Part shown: positions 6,518-53,304 of the stretch, in pieces
Layout: the number at the start of each line of letters is the position of its first letter
How positions within the stretch are numbered: position 1 is the first letter of the stretch
Origin: Hypanus sabinus
Taxonomy: Eukaryota
Length of the DNA: 64,000 bases
NCBI RefSeq assembly: GCF_030144855.1
Contig: NC_082710.1
Location: 149,234,001 to 149,298,000, forward strand
Direction: 5' to 3'
The notes under the pieces: generated by a model
Databases searched by the model: none
Told to the model about the DNA's origin: nothing
The model's input: the letters and a program-made list of their open reading frames with translations, nothing else
Translations under genes and position numbers: made by a program

Positions 6518-6519
6518 AT

Positions 6520-17043: not shown

Positions 17044-17095
17044 ATGATGCTGCGTCTGCTGCTGCTGGCCCTCCTATGTGGAGGGGTCTCCGGAG
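17044..17095 (+). CDS. MHC class I gene A exon 1 (signal peptide MMLRLLLLALLCGGVSG)
   Basis: ATG, hydrophobic leader, phase-1 donor G|GTGAGT, SXY module upstream, paralogous exon at 59066. Confidence 0.9.
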
Positions 17096-17399
17096 GTGAG
17101 TGAGGTGTCAATGGTCAGCGGGACATTCAGACTCTGGTCAGTCAGTGAGAGGGCGGACACAGGGTAACAGTCCCAAGGCAAGGTGTGAGGGTCCCACAGC
17201 ACCCAGCCTGAGCTCAGTGGGTTCAGTTTTGGGGAGGGGAGGGGAGAGGGGGCTGCAGTTCATCTGGTCCGGGTAACTTATGTACCCTAAGGTCTTTTAG
17301 CGTTTTGAGCACCTTCTCAGTAACTGCACTCACTTCTCTCGCTCACACCCTTCAACATCTGGCACACTGCTAGTGTCTTCCACAGTGATGACTGATACA

Positions 17400-19950
17400 A
17401 AACACTCATTTAGGAGATTGCAGATGAACTAAGAATTTGTTAGCGGCGGCAAAAGTGGAGGCCAGGTCATTGGGTGTATTTAAGGCAGAGATTGATAGAT
17501 TCTTGATTGGAAATGGCATCAAAAGTTATTGGGAGATGGCCGGGGAGTAGGGCTGAGGATGGCAAAAAAGGACCAGCCATGACTGAATGGCAGAGCAGGC
17601 TCGATGGGCTAAATGGCCTAATTCTGCTCCCATGGTCCTATGGGAACCCCTGCGGAGATTGTACATGGGAGATGACATCGGGCGAGAAGCGCAGAGGGAT
17701 GGGTTAACTGAGTGGGAGGGTGATCAGCCAGAAGTCATTGTCCATGTAGGTATCAATGACATGGATAGGATGTGTGATGAGGTTCTGCAAATGGAGTTCA
17801 TAGAATTAGGAGCAAAGTTAAAGGTCAGCACCCCTAGTTTGTGATCTCAGGACTGCTACCCATGCCGTGTGCTAGTGAAGCCAGATCGAGGAAGATGGTA
17901 CAGTTTAATACATGGCTAAGGAGTTGGTGTTGGAGGGAGGGCATAAGGTTTTTTGGATCTTTGGGCTCTCTTCCAAGGAATGGGGGACCTGTATAGAAGG
18001 GATGGTTTGCACCTGAACTGTGGGGTGGTGGGGGTGGGTGTGGGTGGGGAATAATATCCTAGCAGGAAGGTTTTTTAACACAGAATGGTAAGGTTTAAAC
18101 TAGAGCTGCAGGGGGATGGAAACAGTGTGACAGACCAAATAGTGGACAGGTTTTAGAGACAGATATTGGTAAGACCTGAACAAAAGTAAGAATCAAAAGA
18201 TTGATTATCATGTGACTAGTGCCCTAAGCCTCATATATTTCAATGCAAGAGCACCGTAGGAAAGGCAGATGATAGTGCTATAGATGACGTAGTTGGTTTA
18301 CAAACACAGGCAATTTGTAGTGACGGGAGACTATTAACTGGGCAAAGTTTCAGTCAACAGGGTGAGTTGCAACGTAATAGGTAGACAAAATCAGATATAT
18401 CAGTATTATACTGGAGTAAAAGGAATTATATCAGCGTGAGAAAGGAGCTGGTCAGAATTGATTGGAAAAGCACACAGGCAGGGATGTCAGCAGAGCAATT
18501 CAGAAAGCACAGGATATATACATACCGAAGAGGAAGGAGTATTCTGGAGGAAAGATGACACAACAGTGGCTAACAAGAGCAGTCAAAGCCCACATGAAAG
18601 CCAGAGAGGGCACGTAACTGAGCAAAATCGTAGTGGGAAGTTAAAGCAATGGGAAACTTTTAAAAATCAACAGAAGGCAACTAAAAAAAGTCATTAAGAA
18701 GGTAAAGATGGAATACGAAAGTAAACTAGCCAATAATATTAAAGAGGATACCAAAACTTTCTTCAGGTACATAAAGTGCAAGTGCAAGTCAAAGACCAGG
18801 GTGGATATTGGGCCATTGGGAAATTACACTGGAAAGGTATTAATGGGGGGGAAATGAAATGGTGAACAAACCTCATGCCCCCTGAATAAGTATTTTGCAT
18901 CAGAGTTCACCGGGGAAGACCCTAATAGTATGGTGGAATTTCCATGTGTCAGTGTGTGAAGTTACCATAACTAGACTGAAGGTTCTTGGGAAACGGAAAG
19001 GTCTGAACACAGATAAGTCACCTGGACCGGATGGTGTACACCCCAGAGTTCTCAGAAAGGTGGCTGAAGAGGTTGTGGATGCATTAGTAATGACTTTCAA
19101 GAATCACTAAATTCTGGGTTGGTTCTGGAAGACTGGAAAATTGCAAATGTCTCTTCACTTCTGAAGAAGGGAGATAAGCTGAAGAAAGAAAACTGTGGGC
19201 CAGTTAATCTGACCTCAGTGGTTGTGAAGATGTTGGGGTTGATAACGTGGTTCAGTTTGGGAGGTTGAACAAGGAAACTATGTGAATGACTTACATGTAC
19301 ATGCTATGTGAAGGACTTACATAGTGAATGACAAGAATTTGCTGAGGAGTGTGGAACAGGAGTACAAATACCTTGTTCCATGAACGTGGCAACACAGGCA
19401 GACAAATAGTTGTACACGGGTGGTTTCCAGGCTGGGGATGAACCAGGGTTGGTTTGGTGAGTTTCCATAGTTTTAACGTGTGAACCTCCAGGAGCGGCCT
19501 AGACTGAGTGTAGAGGAGACCAGAGACGAGAATGGAGTTGAACAGAAATTCATCGCTTGTGGATTGGTTTATTGCATAGGGTGTTGAAATAACTACTGAG
19601 TTTAGATTTGAAAGTCTCCCAGGTACCAATTCCAACTGCACAACGAGGTAGTTTGTTCCATGTGTTCACAACTCACGTGTAAAGAAATTCTTCCTGATGT
19701 TAGTCTGAAATCTCCCTTTAACCAGTCTCCACCTATGGCCCGGTGTCCTTGTTGGTGGATGAATTCTGAAAGCGCAGCTGGCATCCACCTTACTTATGCC
19801 CTGAATGATTTTGAACTCTTCTATCATGTCTCCTCTCATTCAGCGCTACTTAGGCTAAAAAGATTTAATTCTTTCAATGTTTCTTCATAGCTCATACCCT
19901 GCAGATCTGGAGTGAGTCTAGGTCTCATCCAAAAAACAAATTAGGATCCC
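17400..19950. mobile_element. Stacked decayed CR1 fragments in intron 1 (3' end, esterase-type ORF1, APE/RT; both strands)
   Basis: QPEVIVHVGINDM..ELGAKLK; NTDKSPGPDGVHPRVLRKVA; CR1 3' UTRs. Confidence 0.7.
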
Positions 19951-20904
19951 CTTTCCTGGCCTCAGTTTCTCCTTTCCAGGATCCAATTTATATCAAATCA
20001 AAAGAGATCAATCTCCTTAACTCCAACCATATACATTACTGGAAGATGTAACAGAGGACCTGTTGCTCCCTGTTTCCAACCAAACCTTACCGCTGGGTGA
20101 ACCTGGGGGAGCTAGCAGGTTGCCCAACAGTCGTTTTGACCTTTTGTATTTTGCAGTTTTCTTCTCGGTGTGTTTATTCATTGGAGCCTTCGTGATCGGA
20201 TCAGCCGGTCGTTCATGTGGAAGTCCCTTATTCTTTTTTGATTGGGTTGGCTTGATCAGGGGCATCCCCGCACGGTTACCCATTTTACATATACTCTTAC
20301 TGAATTAGTAGTACTCTATGCTCTATGTTTCTATATATATGTTCCTCTATATTTAAGAGGAAGTTAGATATGGCCCTTGTGGCTAAAGGGATCAGGGGGT
20401 ATGGAGAGAAAGCAGGTACATGGTTCTGAGTTGGATGATCAGCCATGATCATATTGAATGGCGGTGCAGGCTCGAAGGGCCGAATGGCCTACTCCTGCAC
20501 CTATTTTCTGTGTTTCTATGTTTCCAACTGTACTTCATAATCAGATAATTACCATAAACAGATACCTGGGACCCATTAAATTTCATAAAATATTTTATCT
20601 ATTAGGTCTATTCTGCTTCTCCCAGTTTCCTTCTTGTTCTTACTGGAACTCAGGAACTGGTCGCTGGCTGGTTAGGGACAGTCTTCCTCACGTCTCACCC
20701 TGGTCCTGGTCTTAACTCCCGTCTTTCAAGGAAGTCTCATAGATACTGTATCAAATTCTTCCCAATGGGCCAATTGCTTGGTCAAGGTTCAGTGGGATCC
20801 CACATATAGGATTCCCATCTTTGTTGCCAGAATGTTAGGGGAATTTTATTTCCACACCAGACTCGGACCCATGTATTCAGGAGACTCTTTATTCAATGTT
20901 ACAC

Positions 20905-21215
20905 AGAGAGACAATAGACAATAGACAATAGGTGCAGAAGTAGACCATTCGGCCCCTCGAGTCTGCACCGCCATTCTGAGATCATGGCTGATCATTCACT
21001 ATCAATACCCAGTCCCTGCCTTGTCCCCACATCCCTTGATTCCCCTATCCACCAGATATCTATCTAGCTCCTTCTTGAAAGCATCCAGAGAATTGGCCTC
21101 CACCATCTTCCGAGGCAGTGCATTCCACACCTCCACAACTCTCTGGGAGAAGAAGTTCTTCCTCAACTCTGTTTTAAATAACTGACCTCTTATTCTCAAT
21201 CCATGCCCTCTGGTA
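20905..21215 (-). mobile_element. CR1 3' end, young subfamily
   Basis: (ACAATAG)n at about 20909-20931 is the reverse of the CTATTGT tail; FKTELRKNFFSQRVVEVWNAL. Confidence 0.9.
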
Positions 21216-21689
21216 TGGATTGAGACATCCCTCCTGAGAGCAGGAGCTGTACCTTTGGTTGCAGAGAGGTCCTTTAGATATCATACAGGACATGCAAGCA
21301 GTATGGTTACATGTTTGAACAGGAACTTTAGTGATAAAACAGGAACTTTACCCCAGACATTGCTCAAGTGAATACATACACATAGAAACCCTCAAGTTAC
21401 ATAGTCTTGTGATTTACACACAGTCTTGTGACTGGCACCAGCAGGGAAGTACCTGATTTCTGCTGGTCTATGCATTAAGCAGTGTAGACATGCAATTCTT
21501 TAGTCACACCAAGGTATGAACCACAAGTCTGGCAAAATTCATTCACATTTGCATTAATTTTTTTTTTTTTTGTATGTTATATACTTTATATTCAAAGAAA
21601 AATCAAATGGAAATGAGAATGTTGAGATTACCAAATAAAGTCTTACAATTCTTGGCGACAGTACAGGAAATGAGGTCGAATTTGTAGAA

Positions 21690-22900
21690 AAAGCTGATCT
21701 GCAGGATGTCTTCTGTGCCTTTCACTCCGCACCGAGTGCTGCTGATCTACTCCGGTGTCAGACCCGTCATTTGCATTAAATTTCATCTGCCATTTATCTG
21801 CCCACATCTGGATTTTGTTTAGATCTAAGAATATTGATTTTGCTGCCTGAATATTATCAGCCTGTCCCCCTAATTTTATGCCATTAGCAAACTTCACTAG
21901 TTTATTTGTTATGTGCTTATCCAGATCATGAATGTAAATTCAAGAACAGCAGCAGCCCCAAGAACCGTTCCATGTGGAACCCACTTTTAACACCTTCTTG
22001 GTGTGAAAATGATTCTCTCACCATAACTCATTTTTTTTCCGTTTTTGAGCCAATTCTGTGGCCATTCACACACCTGACCCTGAATCCTACCTCCTGTAAT
22101 TTGATTATTAACCTGTTGTGAGGTTCCTTGTCAAAAGGCTTCTAAAAGTCCAATGATACCAACTGCTCTATTGTTGTCATAAATTTGAATTGCCTCTTCA
22201 CACAGCTCCAGCATAATAGTTAAACATGATTTCCCCTTTCTGAACTGATACTGGCTTTCTGCCAACATGTGTGTTCTTATCAGCTGCTTTTCTAACTCAT
22301 TCTTTATTATTGGTCCCATAATCTTATGTGTGAAACATGTTAACCTTACTGGTCTGTAGTTACCGGAGCAGTACAGTCACCCTTCTTATATACTGGGACG
22401 ATGTTAGCCCATTTCAAGAACTCAGGGATCTCACCAGTCTTCAGTGACTTTTGAAAAATGCATGTTTGAGGGTTTGTACATATAATCACAGATGCTTGGA
22501 TATATGTTGTCTGGCCCTGGAGATTTATTAACGTTTATCCTTTTCAGCTGAAGCAGGACCTCACTCTCTAAGATCTCTAAATCATTTTAAACAACTTTAT
22601 TTTTCTCCACACTTACTAACATATTACTAACATCTTTGCAGCTAAAATCTTTAGCAAAATATCAGTTAAGAATATCCACGATGTCCTTCTCTGCATAATT
22701 TAATATAATTTATATTAATAAATTTAATAATTTATTTCTATACATTTAACTTCCTTTTCCTTTTCTACTAAAGTACTGAAAAAATCTCTTGGGGTCAATC
22801 TTAGCATTCATTATCAGCAACATCCTTTTCAACCTGCCTTTTGGCAATCAAATTCCCTCTTAGCTATAGCTCTTGTATTTTCCTATGCCCTATGGTTAAC
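21690..22900 (-). mobile_element. Decayed CR1 RT fragments
   Basis: KFANGIKLGG..WADKWQMKFNA; ESQYQFRKGKSCLT. Confidence 0.65.
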
Positions 22901-23079
22901 ATCATTATTAGTTTTCCTGTATTCATTATATGGCTGGCTTTTATTCAATAATTTATGTATATACTTGCCCAAAAAACTTTCATGATGTCCTCTCCCAAAA
23001 AACTTTGTGACGAACAATGTTATAATCACTCGTTCCTAAAGGTTCAACAACTTCTGTACTCAAAATTCTATCCTGATTG

Positions 23080-25700
23080 TTCTAGTTGTGAGCTGAATGT
23101 CGAAGGTTACATGTTTTATCACGGGGATTGGAAAGTAGGCAGAGGGGGTGGTGTGGCTCTGCTGGTAAGGAATGGCATCAAATCAGTTGGAGGATGTGAC
23201 ATAGAATCTGAAGATGTTGAATCCTCGTGGATTGATTGAAGATACTGCAAGGGTAAAAGGACCCCTATGGCAGTTATATACAGGTCTCTGAACAGTAGCT
23301 GTGATGGGGACCACAGATTACAATGGGAGATAGAAAAGGCATGTCTAAAGGGCAATGTTATAATAGTCACGGGAGAGTTTAACATGCAGGTTGATTGGGA
23401 AAATAAGGGTGGTAAAGGATCCCAAGTGAGTGAGTTTGTTGAATGCCTATGAGATGGCTTTTCATAGAGAAGCTTGTCAGTGAGTTGACTAGGGGATCAA
23501 CTATACGGAATTGGGTGTTATGTAATGAACTGGAGGCGATTAGGGAGCTTAAGCTAAAAGAACCCATCGGAACCAGTGATCATGACATGATTGAGTTCAA
23601 TTTGAAATTTGATAGGGAGAAAGTAAAGTCTGATGTAGCAGTATTTCAGTGGAGTAAGGGAAATTACAGTGGTATGAGAGAGGAGTTGGCCGAAGCAAAT
23701 TGGAAGGAGCTGCTGGCATGGGTGTCAGCAGAGCAGCAATGGTGTGCGTTTCTGGGAAAAACAAGGAAGGTGCAGGACATGTGTATTCCAAAAATGAAGA
23801 AATACTCAAATGGCAAAATAGTACAATCATGGCTGATGAAGTCAAAGCTATTGTAAAAGCAAAAGAAAGGGCATACAACAGAGCAAAAATCAGTGGGAAG
23901 ACAGAGGATTGAGAAGCTTTTAAATACATACAGAGAGCAACTAAAAAAATCATTAGGAGGGAAAAGATGAAATATGAAAGCAAGCTAGTAAATAATATCA
24001 AAGTGGACAGTAACTGTTTTTTCAAGTATGTCATCATGGTTTCCTGAAGGGAAAATCTTGTCTGATGAACCTGTTGGAATTCCTTGAGGAGATTACAAAT
24101 AGGATAGATATAGGGGATGCACTGGCCACTGTATATTTGGGCTTACAGAAGACCTTTGACAAGGTGCCACACTTGAGGCTACTTACCAAGTTAAGAGCCC
24201 ATGATATTACATGAAAGTTACTGGCATGGTTAGAGCATTGGCTGATAGGTAGGAGGTAGAGGGTGGAAATGAAAAGATCCTTTTCCCGTCGGCTGCCAGT
24301 GAGTAGCATTCCGCAGGGGTTGTGTTGGGACCGCTTCTTTTTATGCTGTATATCAATGACTTATATGATGGAATAAATGGCTTTGCGGCCAAGTTTGCAG
24401 ATCTTATGAAGATTGGTGGGGGGTGGGGGGCAGGTACTGTTGAGGAAGTAAATAGGCTGCAGAAGGACAGAGAGATTAGGAGAATAAACAAGAAAATAGC
24501 AAATGAAATACAATGTTGGAAAATGCATGGTCATGCACTTTGGTGGCAAAAGTAAATGTACAGACTACTTTCTAAATGGGAAGAAAATCCAAAAACCTGA
24601 GATGCAAACAGACTTGGGAACCCTGAAGGTTAACTTGCAGGTTCAGTCTGTGGTGAGGAAGACAAATATAATGTTAGTATTCATTTCAAGAGATCTTGAA
24701 TACAAGAGCAAGGTTGTGATGCTGAGGCTTTATAAGGCACTGGTGAGGCCTCACTTTGAGTATTGTGAACAGTTTGGGTTCATCATCTCAGAAAAGATGT
24801 GCTAGCATCGGGCATTGGAGAGGGTTCAGAGGAAGTTCACAAAGATGATTGGGCATTGGAGAGGGTTCACAGGAGGTTCACAAAGATGATTGGGCATTGG
24901 AGAGGGTTCACAGGAGGTTCACAAAGATGATTGGGCATTGGAGAGGGTTCACAGGAGGTTCACAAAGATGATTGGGCATTGGAGAGGGTTCACAGGAGGC
25001 TCACAAAGATGATTGGGCATTGGAGAGGGTTCAGAGGAAGTTCACAAAGATGATTGGGCATTGGAGAGGGTTCAGAGGAGGTTCACAAAGATGATTGGGC
25101 ATTGGAGAGGGTTCAGAGGAAGTTCACAAAGATGATCGGGCATTGGAGAGGGTTCACAGGAGGTTCACAAAGATGATTGGGCATTGGAGAGGGTTCACAG
25201 GAGGTTCACAAAGATGATTGGGCATTGGAGAGGGTTCACAGGAAGTTCACAAAGATGATCGGGCATTGGACAGGGTTCACAGGAAGTTCACAAAGATGAT
25301 TGGGCATTGGAGAGGGTTCACAGGAAGTTCACAAAGATGATTGGGCATTGGAGAGGGTTCACAGGAGGTTCACAAAGATGATTGGGCATTGGAGAGGGTT
25401 CACAGGAAGTTCACAAAGATGATTGGGCATTGGAGAGGGTTCACAGGAGGTTCACAAAGATGATCGGGCATTGGAGAGGGTTCAGAGGAAGTTCACAAAG
25501 ATGATTCCAGGAATGAGAGGGTTAGCATGTGAGGAACATTTGTTGGCTCTGGGCTGTACTTGATACAATTTAGAAGGATGGTGGGGGAAGGAATCTCATT
25601 GAAGCCTTTCGAATGTTGTAAGGCCTGGACAGGGTAGATGTGGAAAGGATGTTTCCCATGGTGATTTAGGACAAGAAAACACAACCTCAGGGTAGAGGGC
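23080..25700 (+). mobile_element. CR1 APE-RT, rearranged, carrying an internal 41-bp tandem array
   Basis: RGGGVALLVRNGI; GEFNMQVDWEN; LDLVLCN-like..SDH; FAAKFAD; LVRPHFEYCEQF. Confidence 0.85.
24811..25506 (+). repeat. 41-bp minisatellite, 17 copies, derived from CR1 RT sequence
   Basis: Unit gggcattggagagggttcacaggaggttcacaaagatgatt; CR1 resumes at ccaggaatgag (25507). Confidence 0.95.
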
Positions 25701-25719
25701 CAGTAAAATCGACCTCAGG

Positions 25720-28700
25720 ATTCATTTGGGGCCAGTAAATTCAATCTCTGACTGATCCATAGGTCTTGTCAAACCCCAGATAACCTGAATCATCATGGGG
25801 CGATTTAAACATGATCCTCCGATACTTCTCAAGCAGAACCAGATGGGAACGCTGAGGCCTGTCTGGAGGAGACATGACCCGGTATAGAATCTGGTTCCTC
25901 AACTTCAGTTTGTTCCATTCTCTCAGCAGTAGAGATACAACAGGGCAGTTCATCTTTTCAGCTTGGACCATATCCCCTTTCACAACAGCTGACCAAACGG
26001 TACCTATGTAAGGGTCATCATGCTGAGCGGCAGCCGCTTCCCCTGGGCTCAGCTCAGGCAACTCAGAGCTCAGAGTTGCAGCAAGCTGATGGAATGGCAC
26101 AACTAGAAGCTCCCAAATGATCTGCTCGATCCGGTCCTCGCCTTTCCTCTGACTTCCCTGATGGAGAACTGGCACATTGCTTTAACTCCAGGTGCTGGAA
26201 CACACTCCGTCCATTTCCAGCCCTTCATGTGCACCTTGGGGTGATGTATCTGCATCAATGCCAGGGTCACCAGCCGGTACTTCAGGCTGAGGTCAGAGGC
26301 AGACAACCCCACCAACTACTGATGGCCTGTGGCATCCAATTTTGCCGAGGTCAGGATGTAAGTTAATGGATTATTGTCAGTCCTCATCTCCAACTGGCAT
26401 CCTTTCAAACTGGAAGAATCCAAGTGGACATATGAATTCACCTTCTCTTTGTCAGCCTCACTCATGGGTATCTGATAATACCCACTTCTTAGGTTCTGCA
26501 CACTGAACCATTTTACTCCATTCAGGCAGGCCCGTGTGTCCTCCGTCGTTGGAACAGTCGGGGACTGTGCGTCGGTTCCCAGTCTGATGGTCAACGCACA
26601 GTAGTACCTTCCCATTATTCTTCCTCGTCACCACTATAGGGGAAGCATAGACACTCCTGGACTCAGTGATAATCCCAGCTTCCTCAGATGTTACCGGACG
26701 TTCTCCACCTTGGTGGGTGCCAGTGGCTGAGACCTTTCTCTGAAAGGGTTGTCCTCTCTCACTCAGGCGGTGTGGCGAGTTAACTTGGAACAACCCACAT
26801 CAAACTCGTCAGTAGAAAAGACATCTTCAAACTTTAACATCTCTGTCAGTCTCCTTTTCCATCTCCCAGGTACTGGGGAGTCACCGAAGTTGAACGATTT
26901 GGCTGTCAACTTTCCTGTTCCAGGAGATTGTCTCTCTCCTGGTTTTCTCACAGGAAAGTAGGCGTTATATTCACTGGAAACAGATGTGCCATCGACATTC
27001 CCCGCCCGAGGGTGGCGACTCACTCTCTCTGAAGTGTTCCTGACAATCACTGTCATCCTGTTCACCTGTACAACCCATTGTTTCTGCAGTTCAGGCCTCA
27101 CCAATACCCCAGCAGGTATGCGTGACTCCTCTTTGAGGTCTTCCGGAGCACCCACCAGGTGCCCCCCCCCCGGCATTGGGTATTCCGGGAAATCTGGGGT
27201 TTCCCGTCACTCTAGCTACTTCCCCAGACTGTAGCACGATGGGTCTGTACTGGGTGAACCACACATTTCCTCGTTTGAGCTCATCATCCAGCCTAGGGTG
27301 AACCTGCACTCCCTCAAAAGCAGCTCTGAACATGGTGAACGGACAGGGATTCAGAAAGCTCTCGGCAACTTTCTCCTTGCAGGCTCCCACTTGCCTCCTC
27401 ACAATGGGATTATTCATTCCCACAAGAACTGAAGCTTCACCTTCTCAACCGGGTCCGGACAAACCAGAACTAACGTCTCAAGGACCCCAGCTGCCTCCGG
27501 AACTCCAGCTTCACTGACAAATACCATCATCCGGATAGTCATTAGTACGGAGGCCCGAGAGCTCTCGGGCACTGAGTGGCATCAATGGTAAACGAGTCAA
27601 ATACCGTTTGTAGAAGGGTTTGTACAGCAGAGAAACTAAGTATGGCTCCAGCATGAATACTCCCGATCTGGAAGGATACACTGGAGTTTGGCCTCACTAA
27701 GCCTTCGTGAATAGGACTTTTCACTTCAGTCTTTTCCTTGACACATTGATTGAAACGAAACGCCAGGCCGTTCCCTCACTGGGCCTCTCCGAAGTTTCCC
27801 GATTCCCCTTCTGTTTAAGCAACCGTGGGTTCACCACATTTATAACAGACAACACTGCTCACTCCCCTCTCCAAGGGACTCCGGTCAATAGCAGCCCTCT
27901 GTTCAGACCGACCCAACAGTGGGTCCGGATCTCTATCGGTTTCATCATGTTTGCTGGCAGCACCCGCCGATATCAACCGCGGTTCCTCGGCTCTCAAATC
28001 TTTCACAAGATCCTGCAAAACTCCCACCTGTCTGGCTTTAGGGGTCACTTCAGCAACAGGGGCAACTAGCGGGGACTGTACCCTGCGGACGTAGGCCTCC
28101 TGCTCCTCCATCACGTTTTCCTCCTCTCTTACTTCTCTGATCAGCTCGACAAATGAGGGAGGGGCGCGTCTTACGGGACATCCGGAGGCTTAAAGCGACC
28201 ATGTCCTGTGACTGTGCGCGCTTCCCCACTTTGTCCATCCTTAACTGATTCACGTTGTCCAGTTGAATCGCTGCTTTAAGCGAGCAACACCACTGTCTCT
28301 GGCCGAAAAATGTGGACAGAAAGTTTCTCCTCTCCTGAAACATGCTGCTAAACACCATCATAAACTCCATTCGACTGCCCGTGGTGCCCAAAACATTTTC
28401 TAATGCTCACATGTAGGCCGCGGAAGTAGCTGAGGGGTTCTCTGTCTTTAAAGATTCCGCTACCTCGGCAGCCGGACCTCTCAGAATCTGTACCACTCAC
28501 TGTCTTTTCACATTATCAGAGCTCTGCTACTCATCCAGCATCTGAGAGGTCTGTTCCCCACTCCTCCTCCCCCCCCACCGGGGGTGGGCTTCACTCCTAA
28601 GAACGTTCTCAAGCTACGATAGCACTGAGTCTCCACAGGTGCACTTTGCCATTTATCCGCCAGGGACGTAAAGGCCGATACCAACTCAGAATTTTCACCC

Positions 28701-29100
28701 CTTACTGGAGGACACATTAGACCTTCCGTATCAGACAACTCCTTCCCCTCACTCTGCAGAAACGAGAACAACTTGTCTTTAAAGTCTCCGCCCTTAGCTA
28801 CGGGAACTCGGGCTCCAGTTCGACTGTCTGGGTTACACTCCACTCCTCTCGGAAAGAATGGACGGCCCATGGCCCCGCCTCTCCCAGGACCCCAGTGGTA
28901 ACAGGAGATCTGCCATTACGTCGGCACTCGTCCACACTAACACAACATCTACCCCCTCCCCCCCATTAACACTACATTTTCCCCATGCTTTAACTTTCCC
29001 TATTGCTTTAACAGTACTTAAAACCCCAATCAACAATTCATCTGGGCTGGGGATTTTCACTCTACACAGAACACAAGCTATCTCTTTGAATCACACCAAT
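25720..29100 (-). mobile_element. Gypsy internal region with PNMA-like gag, CCHC knuckle, RT and integrase remnants
   Basis: VETQCYRSLRTFLGVKPTP (PNMA-like); VVCYKCGEP; SPIVV.RKNNGKVLLCVD; SLHDD-like HDDSGYLGFDKTY. Confidence 0.8.
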
Positions 29101-32100
29101 ACTTAATCCCTGCGGCGTCCATAATCATGTATCATAATCAGTTTCCCGGACGTTAGTTTGACACAGGCTTAACCACAAACCCACTTAACCAATGAATGCT
29201 TAGGGCCATCACACAGCATCCAACGAACTCAATCCCAGATGATCCCTCACAATGAAATCCGTTTTTTCTGGGCGTCTCTGGAAACGGCTCGTTAGCCCCT
29301 CGCTAACAGCCAACGGACTCCACGCTGAGAAATCCACCTTTCTCCGGCTTCATACGTCTAGGTGTGTACAACTTTGGCCCGGCCAAGTCCGTGAGATTGG
29401 GGTATCTCACCCATCCAGACCCCGGTTTGTGTGAATGCCTCCTCAATAACCCATCGGCATAAAATAACAGATTGCTCTCCGCACATAATTATAAGGAAGT
29501 ATATTTATGAATGTTAACCAAGGAGTTAGTAAAGAAAAGAAAGATAAAAAAAACAAAAAGGGCCCATTATAGTTAAACAGTCGCATGTTTACAGTTTGGA
29601 GCTGAAATCTCCCAAAAGCCAAATTCACTTATCCTTGGTAGACCCCCGCGCCTTTGCTCCATCGAATTGCGTTTTCCCACTGCATCGAATCCCACGACCG
29701 GTTCTCTCCAGTGTTGCCTCTCCAGCTGAACACAGACAAAGACCCACACAGGTGTCAGTCACAAAGGCCTTTCTCCCAGCCTTCCCTCGAACTTTCTCCC
29801 TGTTCCTCCATCCTGACTGGATGGCCAACCTTCCTAAGCATCCGTTATCTTGAACATTAACCCAAAACAAGCTTTACAGAGAGACCATTACATGAAATAC
29901 CCTACAGCATTAGCAGTAAAACCTTCAGGGCTACTCCTCCACCTTTACGATCTTGCCCATCTTTCCTAAGTAAAGTATATAATTTAATACTATATTCATC
30001 ATTGCGCTTTGAGGTCAGCCAGGTTTCAGTTATTATCTCACACTTATACACATTCATATAATTCCAGCTCATTTATTTCATTCTTAATACTTGCATTTAT
30101 ACAGGCCATCCTTTGTCCATTCTGACCACCTTGTCAGTTCTGTTCATAAGCTTCCCGCATAACTTTTTAAATTTGTCTTGCAGAACTGACAGCCTGCCCT
30201 TAACCTATGTCATTTGTTCTGTTGTGGACAATGACGACTGGATCCATCCCAGCTCCGGCCAGCCGCATATCTACTCATCCAGGGAGGTCTCCTACTTGTG
30301 CTCCTGTTACGAGACCCCTTGTCAGTACCTGATTCTCAATACCCCCCCCCCCCCCAGTCCCTATTACCACTACTTTCTTTTAAGGGGGTTTAGTTTTAGG
30401 ATTAGAGACGGTCTGCTCTGCGACCACCTCAGAGGTTCCATGGTTATTGTGGAGCATCACTAAATGTTCAAAATGATTGGACACTTCCAATTCTGGAGTT
30501 GGTGCTCCTGGACAACATGCACATCTTACGCTGAACTTCCTTCCCACGATCACCCTCCTGTCTCTCTGGTCTGGATCCTCAACCCATGGCTCTCTTGGGG
30601 TGCACGCTATCTCCCTAAAGGACATCTGGAGCACATCTGCCAATTCTCTACATCACAGGTCAGCTACCTCCTCCCCAAGTTCCACCAGTGTGTTCCAGAG
30701 TTGTTGAATTAACTGACATTTAGAACATAGAACATAGAATAGACAGCACAGTGTTGTACCAACCCTCAAACCCTGCCTCCCATATAACCCCCACCTTAAA
30801 TTCCTCCAAATACCTGTCTAGTAATCATATGAACTCTCATATTTACATATGAACTCTCCGGGGAGTAATTTTCCATGAATCTGAACATAAGGCAAGACTG
30901 ACATTACAGAGGCTGCATTTTTATTCTTTTAGGGGAAAGAAATAATGAAGATTAAGTGATTATATTTATTGATAGTCTTAAAAGTAAACTACTATTTATA
31001 CTACTACTCCTGCTTTGTTCCCGATGTACAGATAGTGCCTAACGCTTAACATGTACTTGGACCTTCTTCGAACTTTCTAGATTTGCATTCCCTGATAATT
31101 TCACTTTCTCCACCAGTAAAATATACCACAAAGTGACTCTTGGTCCCACCTTGTTAGGCCTACAACAACTTCACCACTAACTACTGGCTCGCTTTTTCAT
31201 CAAAAGCACACTAAGCGTCTCTATTACCACTAGTGCTAGTGAACTGCTTATGCAAAGGTGAATAAAGAGTTTGGCATATTCCTTCATTGGTACAAGAGTT
31301 GAGATGTCGTCTTACCGCTGTATAAGACATTAATGAGAATACATTTGGAAATATTGTGTACAGGTTTGATCACCCAGCTATAGGAAGGATGCAATTAACC
31401 TAGAAATGGTGCAGAAAAGATTCACATACAGTTAGCAGAATTGGACGGTTTGAGTTACAAGGAGTGATTGGAGAGGTTGTGACTGTTTTCCATGGAGTTA
31501 AGGAGAGAGGGGTGACTTTCTGGATGTTTATAAAATCATGTGGGGCAAAGATAAAGTGGATGGTCACTAGCTTTTTCTGAGGATTGGAGGACATATGTAG
31601 ATAAAGATAAGGAGGGAAAGATTTAAAGGGGACCTGAGACTGTTGAGTATGTGGAATGAGCTACTCGGGAAAGTGGTACAGGTGGATACAGTTACAGTGT
31701 TTAAAAGATGTTTCGGCAGATACACATCAGAGGCCAGTGAGATATGGGCCTGACACAGGCGAAAGGATTGGCGCAGGGAGGAACCTTTGCCAACATGGTT
31801 GAGTTGAGCCATATGGATGTGTTTCAGTGCCATATGAATCTATGATTTCCCAACTCTTGTATTCTGTGCCCTGACCGATGAAGACCAGAGAATCATATGC
31901 CTTCTACACTACCTCGCTACTTTCAAGGAACTGTGGATTTGAGCCTCATTTATTGTATGTCCTACCCCATACCCTTACACTTGATGGAATTAGCTTCCAT
32001 CGGCCCAAAATCCTTCATCAGGAGTGAAGGACTTCACTCCCGAAACGTCATCACTACCTCCTCCCATAGATGCTGTCTGGCCTGCTGAGTTATGCCAGCA

Positions 32101-32580
32101 TTTTGTGTTTTTTTTATTTATTTCCAGCATCCACAGATTCACTCGTGTAATCCCTGTCAAATGCCTTATTCAGGTCATATACTCAACATCTCCCACCCTG
32201 CCTTCCTTAGTCTTCTTCACAACCATCTCACAAGATGTTGAAGTTAGTGAGGCAGGATTTCCACAGAGCCCTATTGAATTTCTCTGATCAGACTCTGATG
32301 TTCTAAATTTACATAACTCCTTTTGTTTTTTTTGCCAATCGCTTCCCTGCTTCTGATATGAGACTCTCTGCCCGATAGTAACCAGGACTTTCTCTTCTTG
32401 AACAAAGGAACAATTATTCAAAATCACACCGGTAGTTAGTAAAGATACAAATATATTTGTCAATGCCCCAGCAACCTTTTTTCTTGCCCCTCTCTATAAC
32501 CTAGGTATATCACTAGCTCTTCCTTTTTCTTGAAACACCCAGTATCGTAGCATGCTGCACACTGATCTAATTGCGCTGCC

Positions 32581-32742
32581 TGCCACGGTAGTGTAGCGGC
32601 TAGCGTGACATTATCACAGCTTAGGGTGTCAGAGTTCGGAGTTCAATCCTAGTATCCTCTGTCAGGAGTTTGTACATTCTCTCTGAGGATTGCATGGGTT
32701 TTCTCCCGATGCTCCAGTTTCTTCCTACAGTCCAAAGATATA
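32581..32742 (+). mobile_element. tRNA-derived V-SINE (HE1-like), 5' half
   Basis: A box ggtagtgtagcgg; B box ggagttcaatcc; V-domain-like ggagtttgtacattctc..gctccagtttcttcctacagtccaaagat. Confidence 0.75.
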
Positions 32743-34584
32743 GAGTCATAGAAATGTACAGCTCGGTGATAGGCCCTTCAGCCCATCTAATCCATGCTGA
32801 ACCATTTTAAAATGCTATTCCCATTGACCTGCACTTGGACCATAGCCCTCCATACACCTAACATCCATGTACCTATCCAAAATATTTTAAATGTTGACAT
32901 TGAGTTTGCATTGCACCATTTCTGCTGGCAGCTCATTCTACGCTCTTACTACCCACTGAATGAAAAATTCTCCACATGTTCTCCTTAATCTTTTCACCTT
33001 TCAGCCTTAATCCATGACCTCTAGTCCCACCCAACCTCAGTGGAAAACCCTGCTTGCATTTACCCTATCTATTTACTCTATTGATAGGTGGAGGAGTGGG
33101 TAGTATTGAGGAAACTGGGAGTCTGCAGAGAGACTTAGATAGTTTAGGGAAATGGGCAAAGAATTGGCAAATGAAATACAATGTTGGTAAGTGTATGTTC
33201 AGACACTATGGTGGAAGAAATAAATGGGCAGACTATTATTTAGATGGTGAGAGAATTCAAAATGCAGTGTCCTTGTGCACTCCAGGTTGCACAAAGGTTA
33301 ACCTCCAGGTTGAGTAGGTGGTGAAGAAGGCAAATGCAATGTTAGCATTCATTTCTAGAGGTATTGAATATAAGAGCAGGGATGTGATGTTGAGGCTCGT
33401 GAGACCACACTTGGAGTATTATGTGCAGTTTTGGGCTCCTTATTTCAGAAAGGATATAATGGAGAAGGTTCAGAGAAGAGTCACAAGAATGATTCCAGGA
33501 ATGAAAGGGTTACTGTATGAGGAATGTCTCACAGCTCTTTGGGCTGTATTCCCTGGAGTTCAGGAGAATTGCGGGGGGTGGGGGGGGGTGGAATCTCATA
33601 GAAACATATCGAATGTTAAAAGGCCTGAACAGATTAGATATGGCAAAGTTATTTCCTATGGTAGGGGAGTCTAGGACAAGAGGGTTTGACTTCAGGATTG
33701 AAGGACATCCATTTAGAACAGAAATGAGGAGAAATTACTTCAGTCAGAGGGTGGTCAATCTGTGGAATTTGTTGTCATGAGCAGTTGTGGAGGCCCAGTC
33801 ATTGGGTACATTTAATGCAGAGATAGATAGGCACTTGATTATCCAGGGCATCAAAGGGTATGGGGAGAAGGCAGGGGAGAGGGGATGACTGGAAGAATTG
33901 GATCAGCCATGGTTGAATGGTGGAGCAGATTCAATGGGCTGAATGGCCTACTTCTGCTCCTACATCTTATGGTCTAATACTGCTTATAATTTTGTATACC
34001 TCTATCAAATCTCCCTTGAATCTTCTACGTTCCAAGGAATAAAGTCTATTTATTCTTTCTTTATGACTCAGGTCCTCCAGTATCATCCTTATAACTTTTC
34101 TTTCAGTCTTAATTACATCTTTCCTTGCAGGTAGGTGGCCAAAATTTCACACAATTCTTTATGCACCTTCAACATAACATCTCATCTCCTGTACTCAATA
34201 CTTCACTTTCTTTACAACCCGATCTATTTGTGATGCCACTTCCAATGAACTATGTACTTGTATTCCGAGATCCCTTTGTTCTACCACACTCCTCAGTGCC
34301 CAATCTTAGTATCATCTGCAGATTTGCTGATCGAGTTAACCACATTATTATCCAGCTCTTTGATATAGATGAGAAACAACAATGGACAGAACACCGATCT
34401 CTGTGCACACCTCTAGATACAGGCTTCCAGTCGGAGAGGCAGCCATCTACTACCACTCTCTGGCTTCTCCCACAAAGCCATTGAGTAATCCATTTCACTA
34501 CATCAGCTTGAATGCTGAGCGAATGAATCTTCTTGACCAATCTCCCATGCAGGACCTTGTCAAATATCTTGATAAAGCCCATGT
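32743..34584. mobile_element. Nested CR1 fragments (-, +, -) interrupting the SINE
   Basis: WAKNWQMKYNVGKC; KEKANAML-like..LVRPHLEYYVQFW; minus FIKIFDKVLHGRLV. Confidence 0.8.
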
Positions 34585-34710
34585 AGACAACATCTAGTGG
34601 TCATTGTAAATTGTCTCATGATTAGGTTTAGGCTCAGATTAAAACCAGTGGTTGCTGGTGGCATGGCTCATAGAGCTGGAACGGCCCTTCCAGATGTTTA
34701 TCAAAAATTA
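34585..34710 (+). mobile_element. Probable 3' half of the V-SINE
   Basis: tggtcattgtaaattgtctcatgattaggtttagg.. resembles the sequence that follows the V-domain in this SINE type. Confidence 0.5.
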
Positions 34711-34826
34711 CAGTAGCATCTTGATCAACAGGGCAAATGGTTCAATTAATTCAGATAGGTATGAAGTTTTGTAGTCAGTTCCAGGTACGTCTTTCATGAT
34801 GAATGGTTCGGAATGTTTTAGAAGAG

Positions 34827-35017
34827 GTTGTTGTTGTTGAGTGCCATCGAGTCATCGCAACCCTATGGGTAGTGTAATTGGCCGTCAAGTTTTCATAACA
34901 AGATACAGAAGTAGATTGCCAGGCCTTTCTTCTGCACAAATACTGCTGCTGCCCATGTTGGGACCCAACAGGATTCAAACTCAGGATCAGTGCTGATGCC
35001 ACTACACCACCGGCCGG
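34827..35017 (-). mobile_element. tRNA-headed SINE with a (CAA)n tail
   Basis: Minus strand ccggtggtgtagtggcatc (A box), gagtttgaatcc (B box), 3' actcgatggcactcaacaacaacaac. Confidence 0.65.
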
Positions 35018-35019
35018 TT

Positions 35020-36480
35020 AGAAGAGGTACCTAGGTGTAAAACTACACAATTCCCTGGAAGTGGCATCACAGGTAGGTAGGTTGGCGAAGAATGGTTTTG
35101 GCAGGTTCGTCTTCACCAGTCAAGTCACTGAGTATAGAAGTTGGTTCGTTATTTACAGAACATTAGTGTGGATTCATTAGGAGTATTGTGATCTAGTTTC
35201 GTCACCCTGTTTCAGGAAAGATGCAATTAAACTGTAAAATAGCAGAGGAGATTTATGAGCATGTTGCCTGGACTGGAGGGATTGTTATGGAGACTGACTG
35301 GGCAGCCTGGGATTTTTGACTTTGGGATTTAGGAGCATGAGGGGGTGATCTTGTTGAAGTGCGTAACAGGTAGGAAGGACAAATGAGATTTGGTGGATGT
35401 TGTGCACGTGGATTTTCAGAAGGCCTTTGACAAAGTATCACATGCAAGGCTGATTAATAAGATACATGGCATTACTGGAAAGATACTAGTGTGGATAAAG
35501 CAAGGGCTGATTGTTAGGAGGCAGAGTGTAGGAATGAAGGAAGAATTTTCTGGTTGGATACTGGTGACTAGTTACGTTCTGCAGGGGTCAGTTTCGGGAT
35601 TGCTTCTCTTTACATTGTATGTCACTGATTTGGAATTGCCACAGAATTGATGGCTTTATGGCCAAGTTTGAGGATGATATGAAGATAGGTGGAGGGACAG
35701 GCAGTGTTCATGAAGCAGAGAGGCTGTAGAAGGACTTGGGCAGATTAGGAGAGCAGGCAAAGAAGTGGCAGATGGAATACAGTGTCAGGAAGTGTATGGT
35801 CATGCACTTCGGTAGAAGGAATAATAGCATAGACAATTTTCTAAATGGAAAGAGAATTCAAAAGTCTGAGGTGCAAAGGGACTTGGGATAATCTTGGGAT
35901 TCCCTCAAGATTAACTTTCAGATTGAGTTGGTGCTGAGGAAGGCATGTGAAATTTTAGCATTAATTTTGAGAGGACTGGAATATAAAAGCAAGGATGTTA
36001 TGTTAAGGCTTTGTAAGGCACTGGTTAGCCTCACTTGGAGTACTGTGAGCAGTTTTGAGCCCCTTTTTTAAAGGAAGGATGAGCAGACATTGGGGAGGGT
36101 TCAGAGGAGGGTCATAAGAATGACTCTGGGATTGAAACACTCTATGGGAGTATGAGGAGCAATTGATGGGTCTAGCCTTGTACTCGCTGGAAATAAGGTG
36201 AATGAGGAGTGATCTCATTGAAACCTATCAAATGATGAAATGACAGAACAGGCTCAATGGGCCAAATGGCCTCAATCTGCTCCTATGTCTTCTGGTTTTA
36301 TTGTAACATCTTGAGGGCGAACGCTCATAATCTTTTTCCCAGGGTTGGGTAATCAGGGCAAAGGTTTAAGGTGGGAGGGGAAAGAGGGCAGAGACGTTTC
36401 TAAAGGGCAACTTCTTCACCCAGTGGGTGATTCATTTTTGCCGGAGTTTATGCCAGATAAAGTGGTGAGGTAGGTACAGT
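35020..36480 (+). mobile_element. Decayed CR1 RT fragments
   Basis: VDVVHVDFQKAFDKVSHARLI; VLQGSVSGLLLF. Confidence 0.75.
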
Positions 36481-37409
36481 AACACCATTCAAAAGGTACA
36501 GAGTTTGGCTGGAATTGAACCCAGAACACTCACACTATAAAACTTTATGCTAACCATTGCATTCCTCTATCAAAGGGCAAATCTGCTTTGCTTTTCCTCA
36601 CAGAATGGCCGCACCTCTTTTCCTACCCTTCCTATAGCTTTCCTCCACCAGTGATCCCACAAATTCTGCCTGTCCCACTGTTGCCTCTGGTTCTGCTGAC
36701 TGAGTGACGTCCTGTCCATCAGTGGAGGGTTCGTTCTCCACTTAGATCCTCTCTCTGCCTCAAATGTGGTTTTCCAGACACAGCAGCATATGGAGCTGAG
36801 GTGATCCACTTATGGGAGGTGTAACAGCCTCCCCCCCCCCTCTTTGGACACCCTGACAGTAACCCCAGGAGTCACTGTGGGTCAGAGGTGAAGTGAGAAG
36901 CACTCTACAGGAGCTGGGAGAGTGCTGCTACTGGTGGGGAACTTGGTGCGAGTTCTCAGCTGGTCTCTCCACTGACAGCAGGGAGAAACTAAACCAGGGA
37001 GGGAGCACAGACTATTCCTGACCGTGACTGGAAGTGTTCTCACCAGCACTGAGCACCTCCCTATCCGTCCAGAGACACTTACCCCGACCTCAGAGAGACA
37101 CACTGATGATTTAACCCAGTCTGGTCCTGATGAATGTGTTCTGTTCCATAACCCCGCTCCATCACTCGGTCCGGGACACCACAGCTCATTCGGGGGAACT
37201 GCAGATGTGATCAGGGTTTCACTCCCACTATCTCCAGCTGAGGCTCACGTGCCTCGGGATGAGGAGTCAGTCCCGGTTCTCTGGGTTTGGGATCCTGATT
37301 CTCTCGGGGGTTGGGATTGGAGCCCAGTGTCTCAGGGTGCTGGTTTCAGAAATGGCTCCCCCTCGGAACCTGGACTCCCAGTCACTCTGACTCTCTGTTC
37401 CAATTTCAG

Positions 37410-37670
37410 GCTCTCACTCTCTCCGTTATTTCAACATGGCGGTGACCCCGGGGTCAGGTGTCCCTGAGTTTGTGGTGGTTGGGTATGTGGATGAGGAGAA
37501 GATCGTTTACTACGACAGTGTGTTGGGACGGACGGTGCCCCGACAGCAGTGGATGGCGGAGAGTCAGGGACCCGACTACTGGGAACGGGAGACACAGATC
37601 TTTCGGGGCAATGAGCAGGTGTCCAAGGCCAACATCCACACCCTGATGAGACAGACCAACCAGACAGGGG
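37410..37670 (+). CDS. MHC class I gene A exon 2 (alpha1)
   Basis: cag|GC acceptor; GSHSLRYFNMAVTPGSGVPEF..PDYWERETQ..TLMRQTNQTG; Y7, Y59 and N86 glycosylation site; G|GTGAG donor; 261 bp. Confidence 0.97.
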
Positions 37671-37689
37671 GTGAGTGGTGAACAACGTT

Positions 37690-48156: not shown

Positions 48157-48998
48157 GTAGCACTGGAGGGAGTTGGACTATTCCCCTGGGGAAGGGGGCT
48201 TGGGCAGGGTATGTCCTCCTGGCATTCCTCAGCAAACCCCATCCCAGCACCCTTGTGTTTCTACACCCAAGGGTGCCCACATCCAACACTGTCTGTCTTC
48301 ACCCCACCATTCCCCACCTCTTTTCCTTCTCTCGTTATAACGGTTTCCACTTCTTGACCGTCCTTAATGTGTCAACCTCTATCACCACCAGCAGTGTTCC
48401 ACACAACCCTGTGATGTCACCATCCCCCCGCCTCTGTACTTCAATCATCTTACAAGCATGTTCTTTGGTATTTGGCATTGCTTCTCTGGTTTTAAAAAAA
48501 AAGTTGGTTGTCCACTTTATCTATATCTCTTATCATCTTATAGACTAAAGATCACTTTGTACTCTACTTGCCCCCAGTGCAAAAGTCACCGAGTCAGACT
48601 GGATGGAATTAGTCCCTTTGGCCTGACATGCCATTGCTGGGTACTTGCTTGCATACTCTGATCCCACTTCCTTGCCCTCTCTATCTTGGTGTTTCAAGTA
48701 CCTGTCTAGATCTATCTTCAATGTTGTGAGAGTCTGTTCTCACCGCCCCATCAGTGTGTTCGATTCCAGCCACCCTCTGGGGTTGTGGGGTGGGGGGAGG
48801 TTGGTGGTGTGTGAAACATTCTTTCTTCCAGTCACTCCCACCGTTCTTGCTTCTCAGTTCCAGATTCTGATCTTGGACTCCTCTGCTCTGGGAAATCAAT
48901 TTCTCCTACTTGCTCTACCTAAGCCTCTCATTACCGTGTGCATCTTATCTGATGGACCTGACCAGGGTCTCTGTGTTTTTCAGCAGCGTGTTTCTCAG

Positions 48999-49028
48999 CA
49001 GGGAACAAAGGCTACAATCCCACCAAAA
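48999..49028 (+). CDS. MHC class I cassette B cytoplasmic exon (AGNKGYNPTK; may start at 48984)
   Basis: Paralog of 44139-44168; A|GTAAGT. Confidence 0.85.
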
Positions 49029-49096
49029 GTAAGTTCGCTGTGAATCACAGCTGGATGGTTGTATTACATTGTTCATATTCACTGTGTCTGATGGGT

Positions 49097-49099
49097 TCT

Positions 49100-49133
<34 letters not shown>
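49097..49133. repeat. (TG)n microsatellite in intron 6 of B (shorter paralog near 44244-44260)
   Basis: Direct reading. Confidence 0.9.
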
Positions 49134-49134
<1 letters not shown>

Positions 49135-49286
49135 ACGCTTTTCTGTATGTCTCTGTCAGGGTGTGAGATTACCCGTATATACCTGTGTTTGTGCGGTGGT
49201 GTATTGTGTGATGTGGCTGTCTTTGTTTCTCTGAGTCTGCACTGTATTGGTAATAAATGTTTTCCTGCCTGTCCTTCCATTCACAG

Positions 49287-49333
49287 CTTCTGACAAAGGA
49301 GAATCCTCCTCCAACTCCTCTGCCCTGGCCTGA
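49287..49333 (+). CDS. MHC class I cassette B last coding exon (TSDKGESSSNSSALA-stop)
   Basis: cacag|CT; Ser-rich tail typical of class I; TGA 49331-33. Confidence 0.85.
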
Positions 49334-50539
49334 GGTAGGAACCGTGTTGGACACCGGTCAATACTGGGCTTCCCAGCTCTTGTCACTGGAGCTGGAGCTG
49401 GTCATTACAGCACAGTCTGGGCACTGAGAAACCCCGGTCCGGAACCGGAACTGTGGGAGGGGGTGTAACCAGTCCCCACAGCACCTCACCCTGGGAATGG
49501 CCTCCTGCTCCGTTCCATTCCAGGGATCCAGTGCCCAGTTTTCATGGTTTGTCACTGGAATTGCTGCTTTTCCAGGGTTGCTCAGTGTTTTGTGGTGGGG
49601 GAGGGGGGTAGGGAGAGTTTGGGGTACGGGGGTGTTGTGGGTGATTTATGGTGGTGAGGGGAGATGGGTTTTGTGGGATGTGTTATGGTTGTGATGTGGT
49701 GGGGAATGGGTTTAATGTTATAGATTATGTTGTAGTGCCTGTTGGAAAAAAAAATCCTTGCCCAGGCTTGTGCCCTGGAAACTTTCCAAGGCGCAAATTC
49801 ACGGTGTATCGAGACTAACACAGAGGCCTACATACCTACCTACTGCTTGTAGGGAATTGGAATCACTGGACATTATTCCCAGTGGTGGGTTTCAGTTGGT
49901 TTCATTGTCAGTGTTGGGGAGGTTTACTGCTGATGCCTCACTCCTTAGCCATTTTTCCTCACCCCTCTCCTCCTGTTCTGCCGGAAATTCAGTTCCCCGC
50001 AGGATATTGATGAAGAAATCTATGGGAACAGAGTGTAATTCTGGGAATTCACTTATCCCTGCATGCATAAGTGCTACACCTGTCCCTACACCTCCTCTCT
50101 TACCACCATTCAGGGACACTTCAAATGTAATGCGGGACCACTCTAGAATTCAAATAGTCAGTTGAAGTTTGACCCAAATAAACTAGAAAGAAAGCTGAGC
50201 TAAGAAACCCGTGTGTGCATAACAGGAAGACTTTGCAGTGGAGATGTTCCACCTACAGTCTGGGTACCTTCATGTAGAGGGAAGGGAAACTAATGCCAGA
50301 GTTCTCTAATGCCAAAGGAGAAAGTCCATGCACCCCAGATCCCTCCATTCATTCACTACATCCTTTCAAGTTCATATCATACCTTTTGAAATGTAACATG
50401 ACACTTTTCACAGGATTAAACTTCATCCACCTCCTCTCCATCCATTCCACCACTCTCTTATCAACTTCTTCACAAATCAGACCCTCCAGTTCTGTACAGA
50501 CTGCAGATTAGACCCCAGTGACTGTGGACCACCAGCTGT

Positions 50540-53131: not shown

Positions 53132-53304
53132 CTGGACTTCTTGTCAGAGCGGGCAGCGGAGTCCGTGGAAGCAGAGTCCTGGGCTTTGGCTAAGTGGGCT
53201 TCGGCGTAAGGGGACTTTGGTAAGCCCGTGTGATTGCTCGCTGAGGGGAAGAAGGTAAGGTCGCTAGGTGCTTTTTAGACTTATTCTATCAATCCAGTTC
53301 AGGT

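Follow-up and report, generated by a model that had tools for sequence, protein, structure and literature searches.

A leaderless MHC class I cassette behind a damaged class I gene in the Atlantic stingray: a probable young gene fragment

This analysis concerns two adjoining class I units, A and B, of the major histocompatibility complex (MHC), in the MHC class I cluster of the Atlantic stingray, Hypanus sabinus. They lie in a stretch of 64,000 nucleotides (CM057978.1:149,234,001-149,298,000 of assembly GCA_030144855.1), which we call the window. A is the upstream gene with a promoter, "cassette B" is a headless class I copy at 46374-49333, and C is the next gene downstream; the conjoined pair is written A-B. 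Along CM057978.1 the class I genes follow in the order Z, A-B, C, D, E. Sequence beyond the window was examined up to +88,755 (window numbering), which covers the body of gene C. Neither the window nor the neighbouring loci that were fetched contain N runs, and the class I exons of the window match the NCBI models for H. sabinus at 100%. Our data suggest that A-B is probably a young headless gene fragment (B) fused behind a crippled gene (A), and not a new splicing system.

Both units are recognizable as class I heavy-chain sequences. Translations of A and B exons match Pfam PF00129 (MHC_I) with E-values of 2e-20 to 5e-24, PF07654 (C1-set) was found in the alpha3 domain of each, and the transmembrane (TM), cyt1 and tail exons were mapped in both. 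The closest proteins in a protein search are batoid class I chains. A and C each have their own signal-peptide exon and an X-Y (SXY-type) promoter, and both are missing from B. At the peptide-termini positions, as read from the translations, A has Y7, Y59, T143, K146 and W147, with Q in place of the R84 of its paralogs; F7 and L147 occur in both B and C, and S143 in B as well. No one-to-one ortholog of A-B was found in Hemitrygon akajei, where the best match reaches 86% to A and 77% to B/C.

All features of A lie on the plus strand. Promoter A (16743-16785) comprises an X1 box, CCTGGCAACAGATG, at 16743-16756 and a Y box, CTGATTGG, at 16778-16785 within a CpG-rich stretch, and its region is 70% identical to that of promoter C at 58688-59246. 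The leader exon (MMLRLLLLALLCGGVSG; 17044-17095, 52 nt) ends in a phase-1 donor, G/GTGAGT, and is identical (100%) to residues 1-18 of the NCBI models P0005 and P0004. Intron 1 (17096-37409) extends over 20.3 kb and holds many transposable elements, and the distal stretch 36511-37409 shares homology with intron 1 of C. The exons for alpha1 (37410-37670, 261 nt), alpha2 (40543-40815, 273 nt), alpha3 (42273-42584), the TM segment (42829-42930, 102 nt) and cyt1 (AVCFSAENEGYNPTK; 44124-44168, 45 nt) follow, and then a 21-nt stump of the last coding exon (44414-44434).

A itself is damaged. The ancestral alpha3 donor after 42536 has been lost (GT to TC), and the last exon is severed after 21 nt, homology to B and C stopping at 44434. 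A cryptic donor after 42584, CTG/GTGAGT, lies 48 nt past the lost one; it is strong and in frame and would add 16 residues to alpha3. From the exon stump the reading frame of A continues into the neighbouring retroelement sequence, where it meets a stop at 44602-44604. Intron 2 of A (37671-40542) is 2.9 kb long and consists mostly of a G-rich minisatellite with a GC skew of up to 0.73; three frames of it translate into repeats of the GGECSMGG type. The counterpart of this intron in B measures 448 bp.

Cassette B stands behind A in the same orientation. Its alpha1 exon (46374-46634) is identical to that of C at 260/261 nt, its alpha2 exon (47083-47355) carries three B-specific non-synonymous changes (47236, 47254, 47280), its alpha3 exon (47577-47840) has an intact donor, GTAAGA, and its TM exon (48052-48156) has an in-frame insertion of 3 nt relative to C. 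The cyt1 exon (48984-49028) is nucleotide-identical to cyt1 of C and of Z, and the last coding exon (49287-49333) ends in …SSALA and a stop codon. The 3' untranslated region (UTR) and flank (49334-50046) are homologous to C up to 50046, and the earliest AATAAA downstream of the B stop is found at 50177. A first-pass annotation, made from the letters alone, had described B as six intact coding exons with canonical splice sites, all in phase 1-1. This description holds: all acceptors are AG, the five internal donors are GT, the exon lengths are 261, 273, 264, 105 and 45 nt, and the reading frame is open over 331 codons plus the stop. An AATAAA hexamer is also present at 44379 in A, at 49252 in B and at the same site in C; it lies in the last intron, 35 nt 5' of the last-exon acceptor.

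The missing head of B was sought in several ways. A scan for an ATG, a hydrophobic core and a phase-1 donor found none in 44169-46373, and the same scan recovers both true leaders, at 17044 and 59066. A tblastn search with the leaders likewise returned only two sites, neither of them in the gap between A and B. On the plus strand of the window the X1-Y module occurs only at 16743 and 58786, and the observed/expected CpG ratio is 0.83-0.97 at promoters A and C versus 0.12-0.46 across the gap. Both AATAAA and ATTAAA are missing from 44435-46373. The earlier claims that leader, promoter and canonical poly(A) signal are all wanting between A and B are borne out by these scans. A minus-strand X-box-like motif with GATTGG at 61700-61730 (61717), in intron 1 of C, was considered and set aside, having no leader-like exon downstream; it is probably a chance match.

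The sequence between the two units can be fully accounted for, as had been proposed, by a piece of a Penelope-like element (PLE; ~44435-44908), a distal intron 1 copy in two parts (44909-45241, 46231-46373) and a fragment of a long interspersed nuclear element (LINE; 45242-46230). The PLE piece (44435-44908, plus strand) is 5'-truncated, lies in sense orientation and exactly fills the junction of A and B; its homology to other PLE copies extends to ~44914 and so overlaps the start of B intron 1 at 44909. Within it, donors at 44534 and at 44594 are in frame and phase 1-1. The remnant of B intron 1 (44909-46373, plus strand) is split by the LINE fragment, a piece of reverse-transcriptase sequence in minus orientation that is also carried by C. 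The name PLE rests on homology to a longer copy at 52021-53274 (minus strand) with a weak GIY-YIG match over the homologous part, and the name LINE on homology to longer copies with RVT_1 matches; the junction fragments themselves gave no Pfam match. A 5'-truncated sense PLE stands exactly between sequences that are non-contiguous in the paralogs, the arrangement expected of a retroelement-associated deletion or gene fusion. An origin of B by 3' transduction from a PLE was rejected, since neither A nor C has a PLE at the homologous intron site and B has kept all of its introns. Rejected as well was the idea that a PLE scrap at the right edge of B (50050-50115) marks a duplication unit: where it overlaps the junction copy, several positions set the two apart, it closely matches the copy at 58 kb, and we read it as an unrelated insertion.

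The ancestry of B becomes apparent from gene C, which has an X-Y promoter at 58786-58827 and a leader at 59066-59117 (plus strand). Its body (75036-78755, beyond the window, with alpha1 at +75036) translates exactly to P0003 (isoform X2, 347 aa). B and C align without a break over 4.2 kb (44909-49092 to 73550-77807) and are 96.2% identical there. The alignment takes in the LINE insert, common to both and missing in A; only 14 of 992 exon nucleotides differ. Identity of B to A is 80-88%. The homology of B to A (from 36931) and to C (from 73550) begins at one and the same point, 44909, inside intron 1, whereas homology between A and C extends upstream of that point by another ~430 bp, to A 36511 and C 73111, so B must be a C-type gene that was cut within intron 1. 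B is thus a 5'-truncated copy of a C-type gene and not a twin of A. It keeps only the last 1.46 kb upstream of alpha1, promoter and leader being gone. Part of the gene is missing relative to its paralogs, as in a gene fragment, and the remaining exons are free of the disabling mutations by which truncated pseudogenes are also recognised.

The 3' module, from cyt1 into the 3' UTR, says little about ancestry, because it is homogenised among the genes. Between B and D it is 94-95% identical and between B and C 93-100%, and in A the final 110-130 nt match B and C at 98-99%. Across B, C and D (48970-49748 in the window, 78602-79181 in the extended sequence, and L002:28031-28802), and likewise over the end of A (44307-44434), identity of the module reaches 93-99%, and that of the gene bodies only 77-88%. 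As far as can be judged from such identities, this indicates that the tail module is under concerted evolution. Elsewhere in the window, a long tandem repeat at 5413-6627 is open in several frames, with units of the type YYALTDTLTVSSPC; it resembles a minisatellite and not a gene.

Since there is no poly(A) signal before B, transcription from promoter A should enter B. Every splice join from A to B is in frame, because all internal exons are phase 1-1. Of the first-pass proposal that transcripts from promoter A read into B, the structural part stands (one promoter and leader, no poly(A) signal, in-frame joins), and it is from these features that we infer the read-through itself. The further proposal, that splicing diversifies class I through a choice of cassette, through hybrid grooves or through a double ectodomain, found no support. 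No annotated product contains B alpha1-alpha3 or the B TM, the A alpha3-to-B alpha1 join occurs in none of the three retrieved isoforms (P0003-P0005), and B shows no measurable constraint, differing from C with a ratio of non-synonymous to synonymous change (dN/dS) of 0.86. No B-specific alpha3 residues appeared in the matches from a search of proteins with 152-485 aa, and a search among proteins of 61-194 aa for RNA-derived fragments with B-specific alpha2 residues gave one unrelated match and was uninformative. The lack of B-specific protein matches weighs little, because B and C are nearly identical. Shared constant exons were not seen either, since TM, cyt1 and tail exons are present separately in each cassette; no search was aimed at selector elements.

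Two NCBI isoforms span the locus. Isoform X1 (P0005) consists of leader A, A alpha1 and alpha2, the A TM, a cyt1 with B/C sequence, and alpha3, TM, cytoplasmic and tail exons of C; isoform X3 (P0004) has leader A and A alpha1, and then the A TM, a cyt1 with B/C sequence and the same C exons. Both skip A alpha3. Exons are used in colinear order, hence the cyt1 of X1 and X3 must be that of B, and it is the only B exon used there. The TM exon of A differs from that of paralog Z (P0127) at a single base (exon position 9), and cyt1 has one and the same sequence in Z, B and C. Consequently, reads across the TM-to-cyt1 junction of Z are indistinguishable from reads joining the A TM to B cyt1, and the junction in X1 and X3 is nucleotide-identical to the normal one of Z (42829-42930 and 48984-49028 in the window; L005:32285-32386 and 34327-34371). 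On this sequence identity, X1 and X3 are probably multi-mapping artefacts that merge A, one exon of B, and C into one "gene".

What splicing of a read-through transcript would yield can be outlined. Spliced in order, A and B would place the B ectodomain after the A TM, and the resulting chain, with its two TM segments, would be topologically meaningless. Alternatively, the stop in the PLE would be retained and splicing would follow downstream of it. A premature stop upstream of a later splice junction triggers nonsense-mediated decay, and such a transcript would be expected to meet this fate. A productive A-B product would need ordered exon skipping.

Loci with one leader and several class I cassettes are also found elsewhere in rays. 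Locus E of H. sabinus (LOC132394446; L004:10001-33667) lies at window +155,144 to +178,810, 91 kb past the window end, and has one leader and two cassettes. Behind a 13.8-kb intron 1 stand alpha1-alpha2-alpha3 cassettes at L004 23823-26119 and 29842-32099 and a tail exon at 33602-33664; the TM exon is deleted from both cassettes, and a cyt1 remnant is left between them (L004 26751-26801). In the NCBI isoforms alpha3 is joined to alpha1 directly (P0028) or via the cyt1 remnant (P0126), which predicts tandem class I chains that would lack a TM segment. The breakpoints of locus E correspond to A 44217 and A 37223, unlike those of A-B, and it must therefore have arisen independently. In Pristis pectinata (LOC127585898 at NCBI; L003:10001-46217, CM019888.1), a single leader stands before three alpha1-alpha2-alpha3 cassettes in tandem, whose splice sites are canonical and phase 1-1, and before one tail exon. 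The sole TM-like match at this locus is inverted (39805-39692), and the annotated product, P0032, is a double ectodomain of 573 aa without a TM segment. In Mobula birostris and M. hypostoma (LOC134346730), where the repeated cassettes are known at the protein level, the models P0026, P0027 and P0029-P0031 have 654-747 aa with two to three cassettes and share the short tail ASDKGES.SNSSAMA. For loci E, Pristis and Mobula we found no description in the literature searched.

In a tree of alpha1-alpha2 units, the multi-cassette units group by genus, the two Mobula species forming one clade; this tree pattern indicates repeated origin or homogenisation. With one leader, at least two alpha1-alpha2-alpha3 cassettes in the same orientation and no leader between them, A-B has the general architecture of these loci. 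It departs from them in that A keeps its TM (42829-42930) and cyt1 and that no alpha3-to-alpha1 join is annotated. We take the recurrence as a structural propensity that comes with a very long intron 1 and phase 1-1 exons. It lends some plausibility to tandem products without establishing them.

Among the explanations considered, a recently beheaded B, which the first-pass annotation had offered as its alternative, fits best, given the homology stop at 44909 within intron 1 and the truncated PLE at the junction. The class I cluster would evolve by birth and death, and A-B would be one product of its rearrangement. We infer that a retroelement-associated deletion, or another non-homologous rearrangement, removed the 3' end of A and the 5' end of B together and left a 5'-truncated PLE copy joining B to the 21-nt stump of the last A exon. 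LINE-1 insertion-mediated deletions provide an analogy for such an event. B would then be a fragment that has not yet decayed, and A-B a largely non-productive conjoined unit without regulated cassette choice. For the origin of B, a partial duplication of C is a conceivable alternative. Several observations weigh against the fragment reading. B has no disabling mutation in 996 nt and none in its 11 splice dinucleotides. Its exons differ from those of C by 1.41%, compared with 3.41% in non-coding sequence (Fisher p = 5.6e-4). The defects of A and B are complementary, such that A leader-alpha1-alpha2 and B alpha3-TM-tail would together give a complete heavy chain. Moreover, one-leader loci with several intact cassettes recur (locus E, Pristis, Mobula), so leaderless cassettes can persist. 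As to the intact exons, simulation with the observed substitution and indel rates gave a probability of 0.06-0.38 that a neutral B would still be intact. The dN/dS of B versus C is based on six non-synonymous and two synonymous changes, and polarization with A as outgroup assigns to B itself, within alpha1-alpha3, three non-synonymous changes, each of them in alpha2, and one synonymous change; for B versus C, as for cassette 1 versus cassette 2 of locus E, the changes are too few for dN/dS to be decisive. Judged by these counts, the low exon divergence between B and C points to exon homogenisation or lack of power and not to constraint at the protein level.

If A-B were instead a productive composite gene, promoter and leader A would drive mRNAs that use B exons, whether as A alpha1-alpha2 joined to B alpha3-TM-tail, as a choice of leader to B, or as a double ectodomain in which A alpha3 is spliced from its cryptic donor to B alpha1. 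Much of the structure suits this proposal: the single promoter and leader with no poly(A) signal before B, the uniform phase 1-1 exons, the B acceptors, which are identical to those of the functional C, the PLE-derived donors at 44534 and 44594, which are also in frame, the complementary defects, and the intact B exons that diverge less from C than the introns do. Joins of alpha3 to alpha1 are, besides, annotated at the independent loci E (P0028, P0126), Pristis (P0032) and Mobula (P0026-P0031). However, protein-database searches gave the B ectodomain no transcript or protein support, and the A-specific NCBI junctions skip A alpha3 and enter the A TM, so that any parts downstream would be cytosolic. 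Unlike locus E and the Pristis locus, A-B retains TM and cytoplasmic exons between its cassettes; shared constant exons were not seen (selector elements were not searched for), the dN/dS of B versus C is about 0.86, and C makes a nearly identical product from its own promoter. On balance we regard a productive composite gene as unlikely, though worth keeping in mind. Somewhat more speculative is the broader idea that rays use class I genes with one promoter and leader and several cassettes, A-B being a recent, membrane-anchored member and the E, Pristis and Mobula loci TM-less secreted versions; A-B may then make a hybrid with an A groove and a B stalk, TM and tail, a B-type chain from promoter A, or a tandem double ectodomain. 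Far less probable than either is a first exon and promoter belonging to B itself and unlike the family leader and X-Y module, with a transposable element as one conceivable source. Promoters can come from transposable-element fragments, and our scans were aimed only at leaders resembling those of the family, X-Y modules, CpG-rich stretches and exons that look like signal peptides; however, all of 44909-46373 is homologous to ordinary intron 1 sequence that C removes by splicing, the gap is CpG-poor and gave no ATG-hydrophobic-phase-1 exon, and the NCBI models that span B start at leader A or leader C, neither of which lies in the gap. We also consider it very improbable that the A-PLE-B junction, or B itself, is an assembly artefact, whether because a haplotig of C was retained or because sequences were misjoined at the PLE repeat. 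B is a near-copy of C, the junction falls in a high-copy repeat with many PLE copies nearby (75-93% identity), and MHC regions are liable to haplotype-related misassembly. Against this, N runs are absent throughout, B and C are 3.4% diverged in non-coding sequence and are further set apart by 19 indels, an 800-bp insertion and unlike flanks on both sides, the PLE piece of only ~475 bp is readily spanned by long reads, and locus E shows the same type of architecture with other breakpoints.

Comparable partial class I copies are common in other MHCs, as in the human one, where truncated class I fragments include HLA-N, -P, -S, -T, -U, -V, -W, -X, -Y and -Z (PMC2848993). Like B, these arose as duplication and deletion reshaped a birth-and-death cluster, and portions of the gene, 5' ends among them, are missing. 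Unlike them, B has its six body exons intact and lies in sense directly behind a paralog without a terminator, with which it is probably co-transcribed. A second human parallel is HCP5, in which a class I promoter and leader are fused to retroviral sequence (PMC6562477). In both HCP5 and A-B, a piece of class I gene has been joined by rearrangement to a retroelement, giving a hybrid unit under a class I promoter; HCP5 has kept the head and lost the body, whereas A-B combines the head of A with the headless body of B via the PLE piece. Ia-like genes near elasmobranch MHC-Ia have been reported to vary in number, and an architecture of the A-B type is not mentioned there (PMC10751288). The batoid loci E and Pristis share with A-B the single leader, the long intron 1 and leaderless cassettes in the same orientation and in phase 1-1. 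The difference is that A-B keeps TM and cytoplasmic exons in both cassettes, while the TM is deleted at E and was not found at the Pristis locus. Dscam exon clusters and clustered protocadherins combine shared constant exons with a selection mechanism, either competing RNA pairings or a promoter for each variable exon. As in conjoined genes and in these two systems, homologous coding units of compatible phase lie in one transcription unit at A-B. Unlike Dscam and the protocadherins, neither shared constant exons nor a selection mechanism were found at A-B (selector elements not having been searched for), and each cassette has its own TM and tail.

If some of the multi-cassette units are expressed, they would give single-chain tandem class I molecules, which we did not find described in the literature searched. 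If they are not, the locus is a warning for annotation: the NCBI models string A, B and C exons together, giving proteins that run alpha1-alpha2-TM-cyt-alpha3-TM-cyt, and such chained models can come from multi-mapped reads. In either case, an intron 1 of 16-20 kb together with uniform phase 1-1 exons would make the class I genes of rays prone to lose or to share a leader, because a breakpoint anywhere in the long intron 1 leaves a leaderless, in-frame cassette behind another gene. Such a propensity for breakpoints in intron 1 would explain A-B and probably also the multi-cassette loci of Hypanus, Mobula and Pristis.

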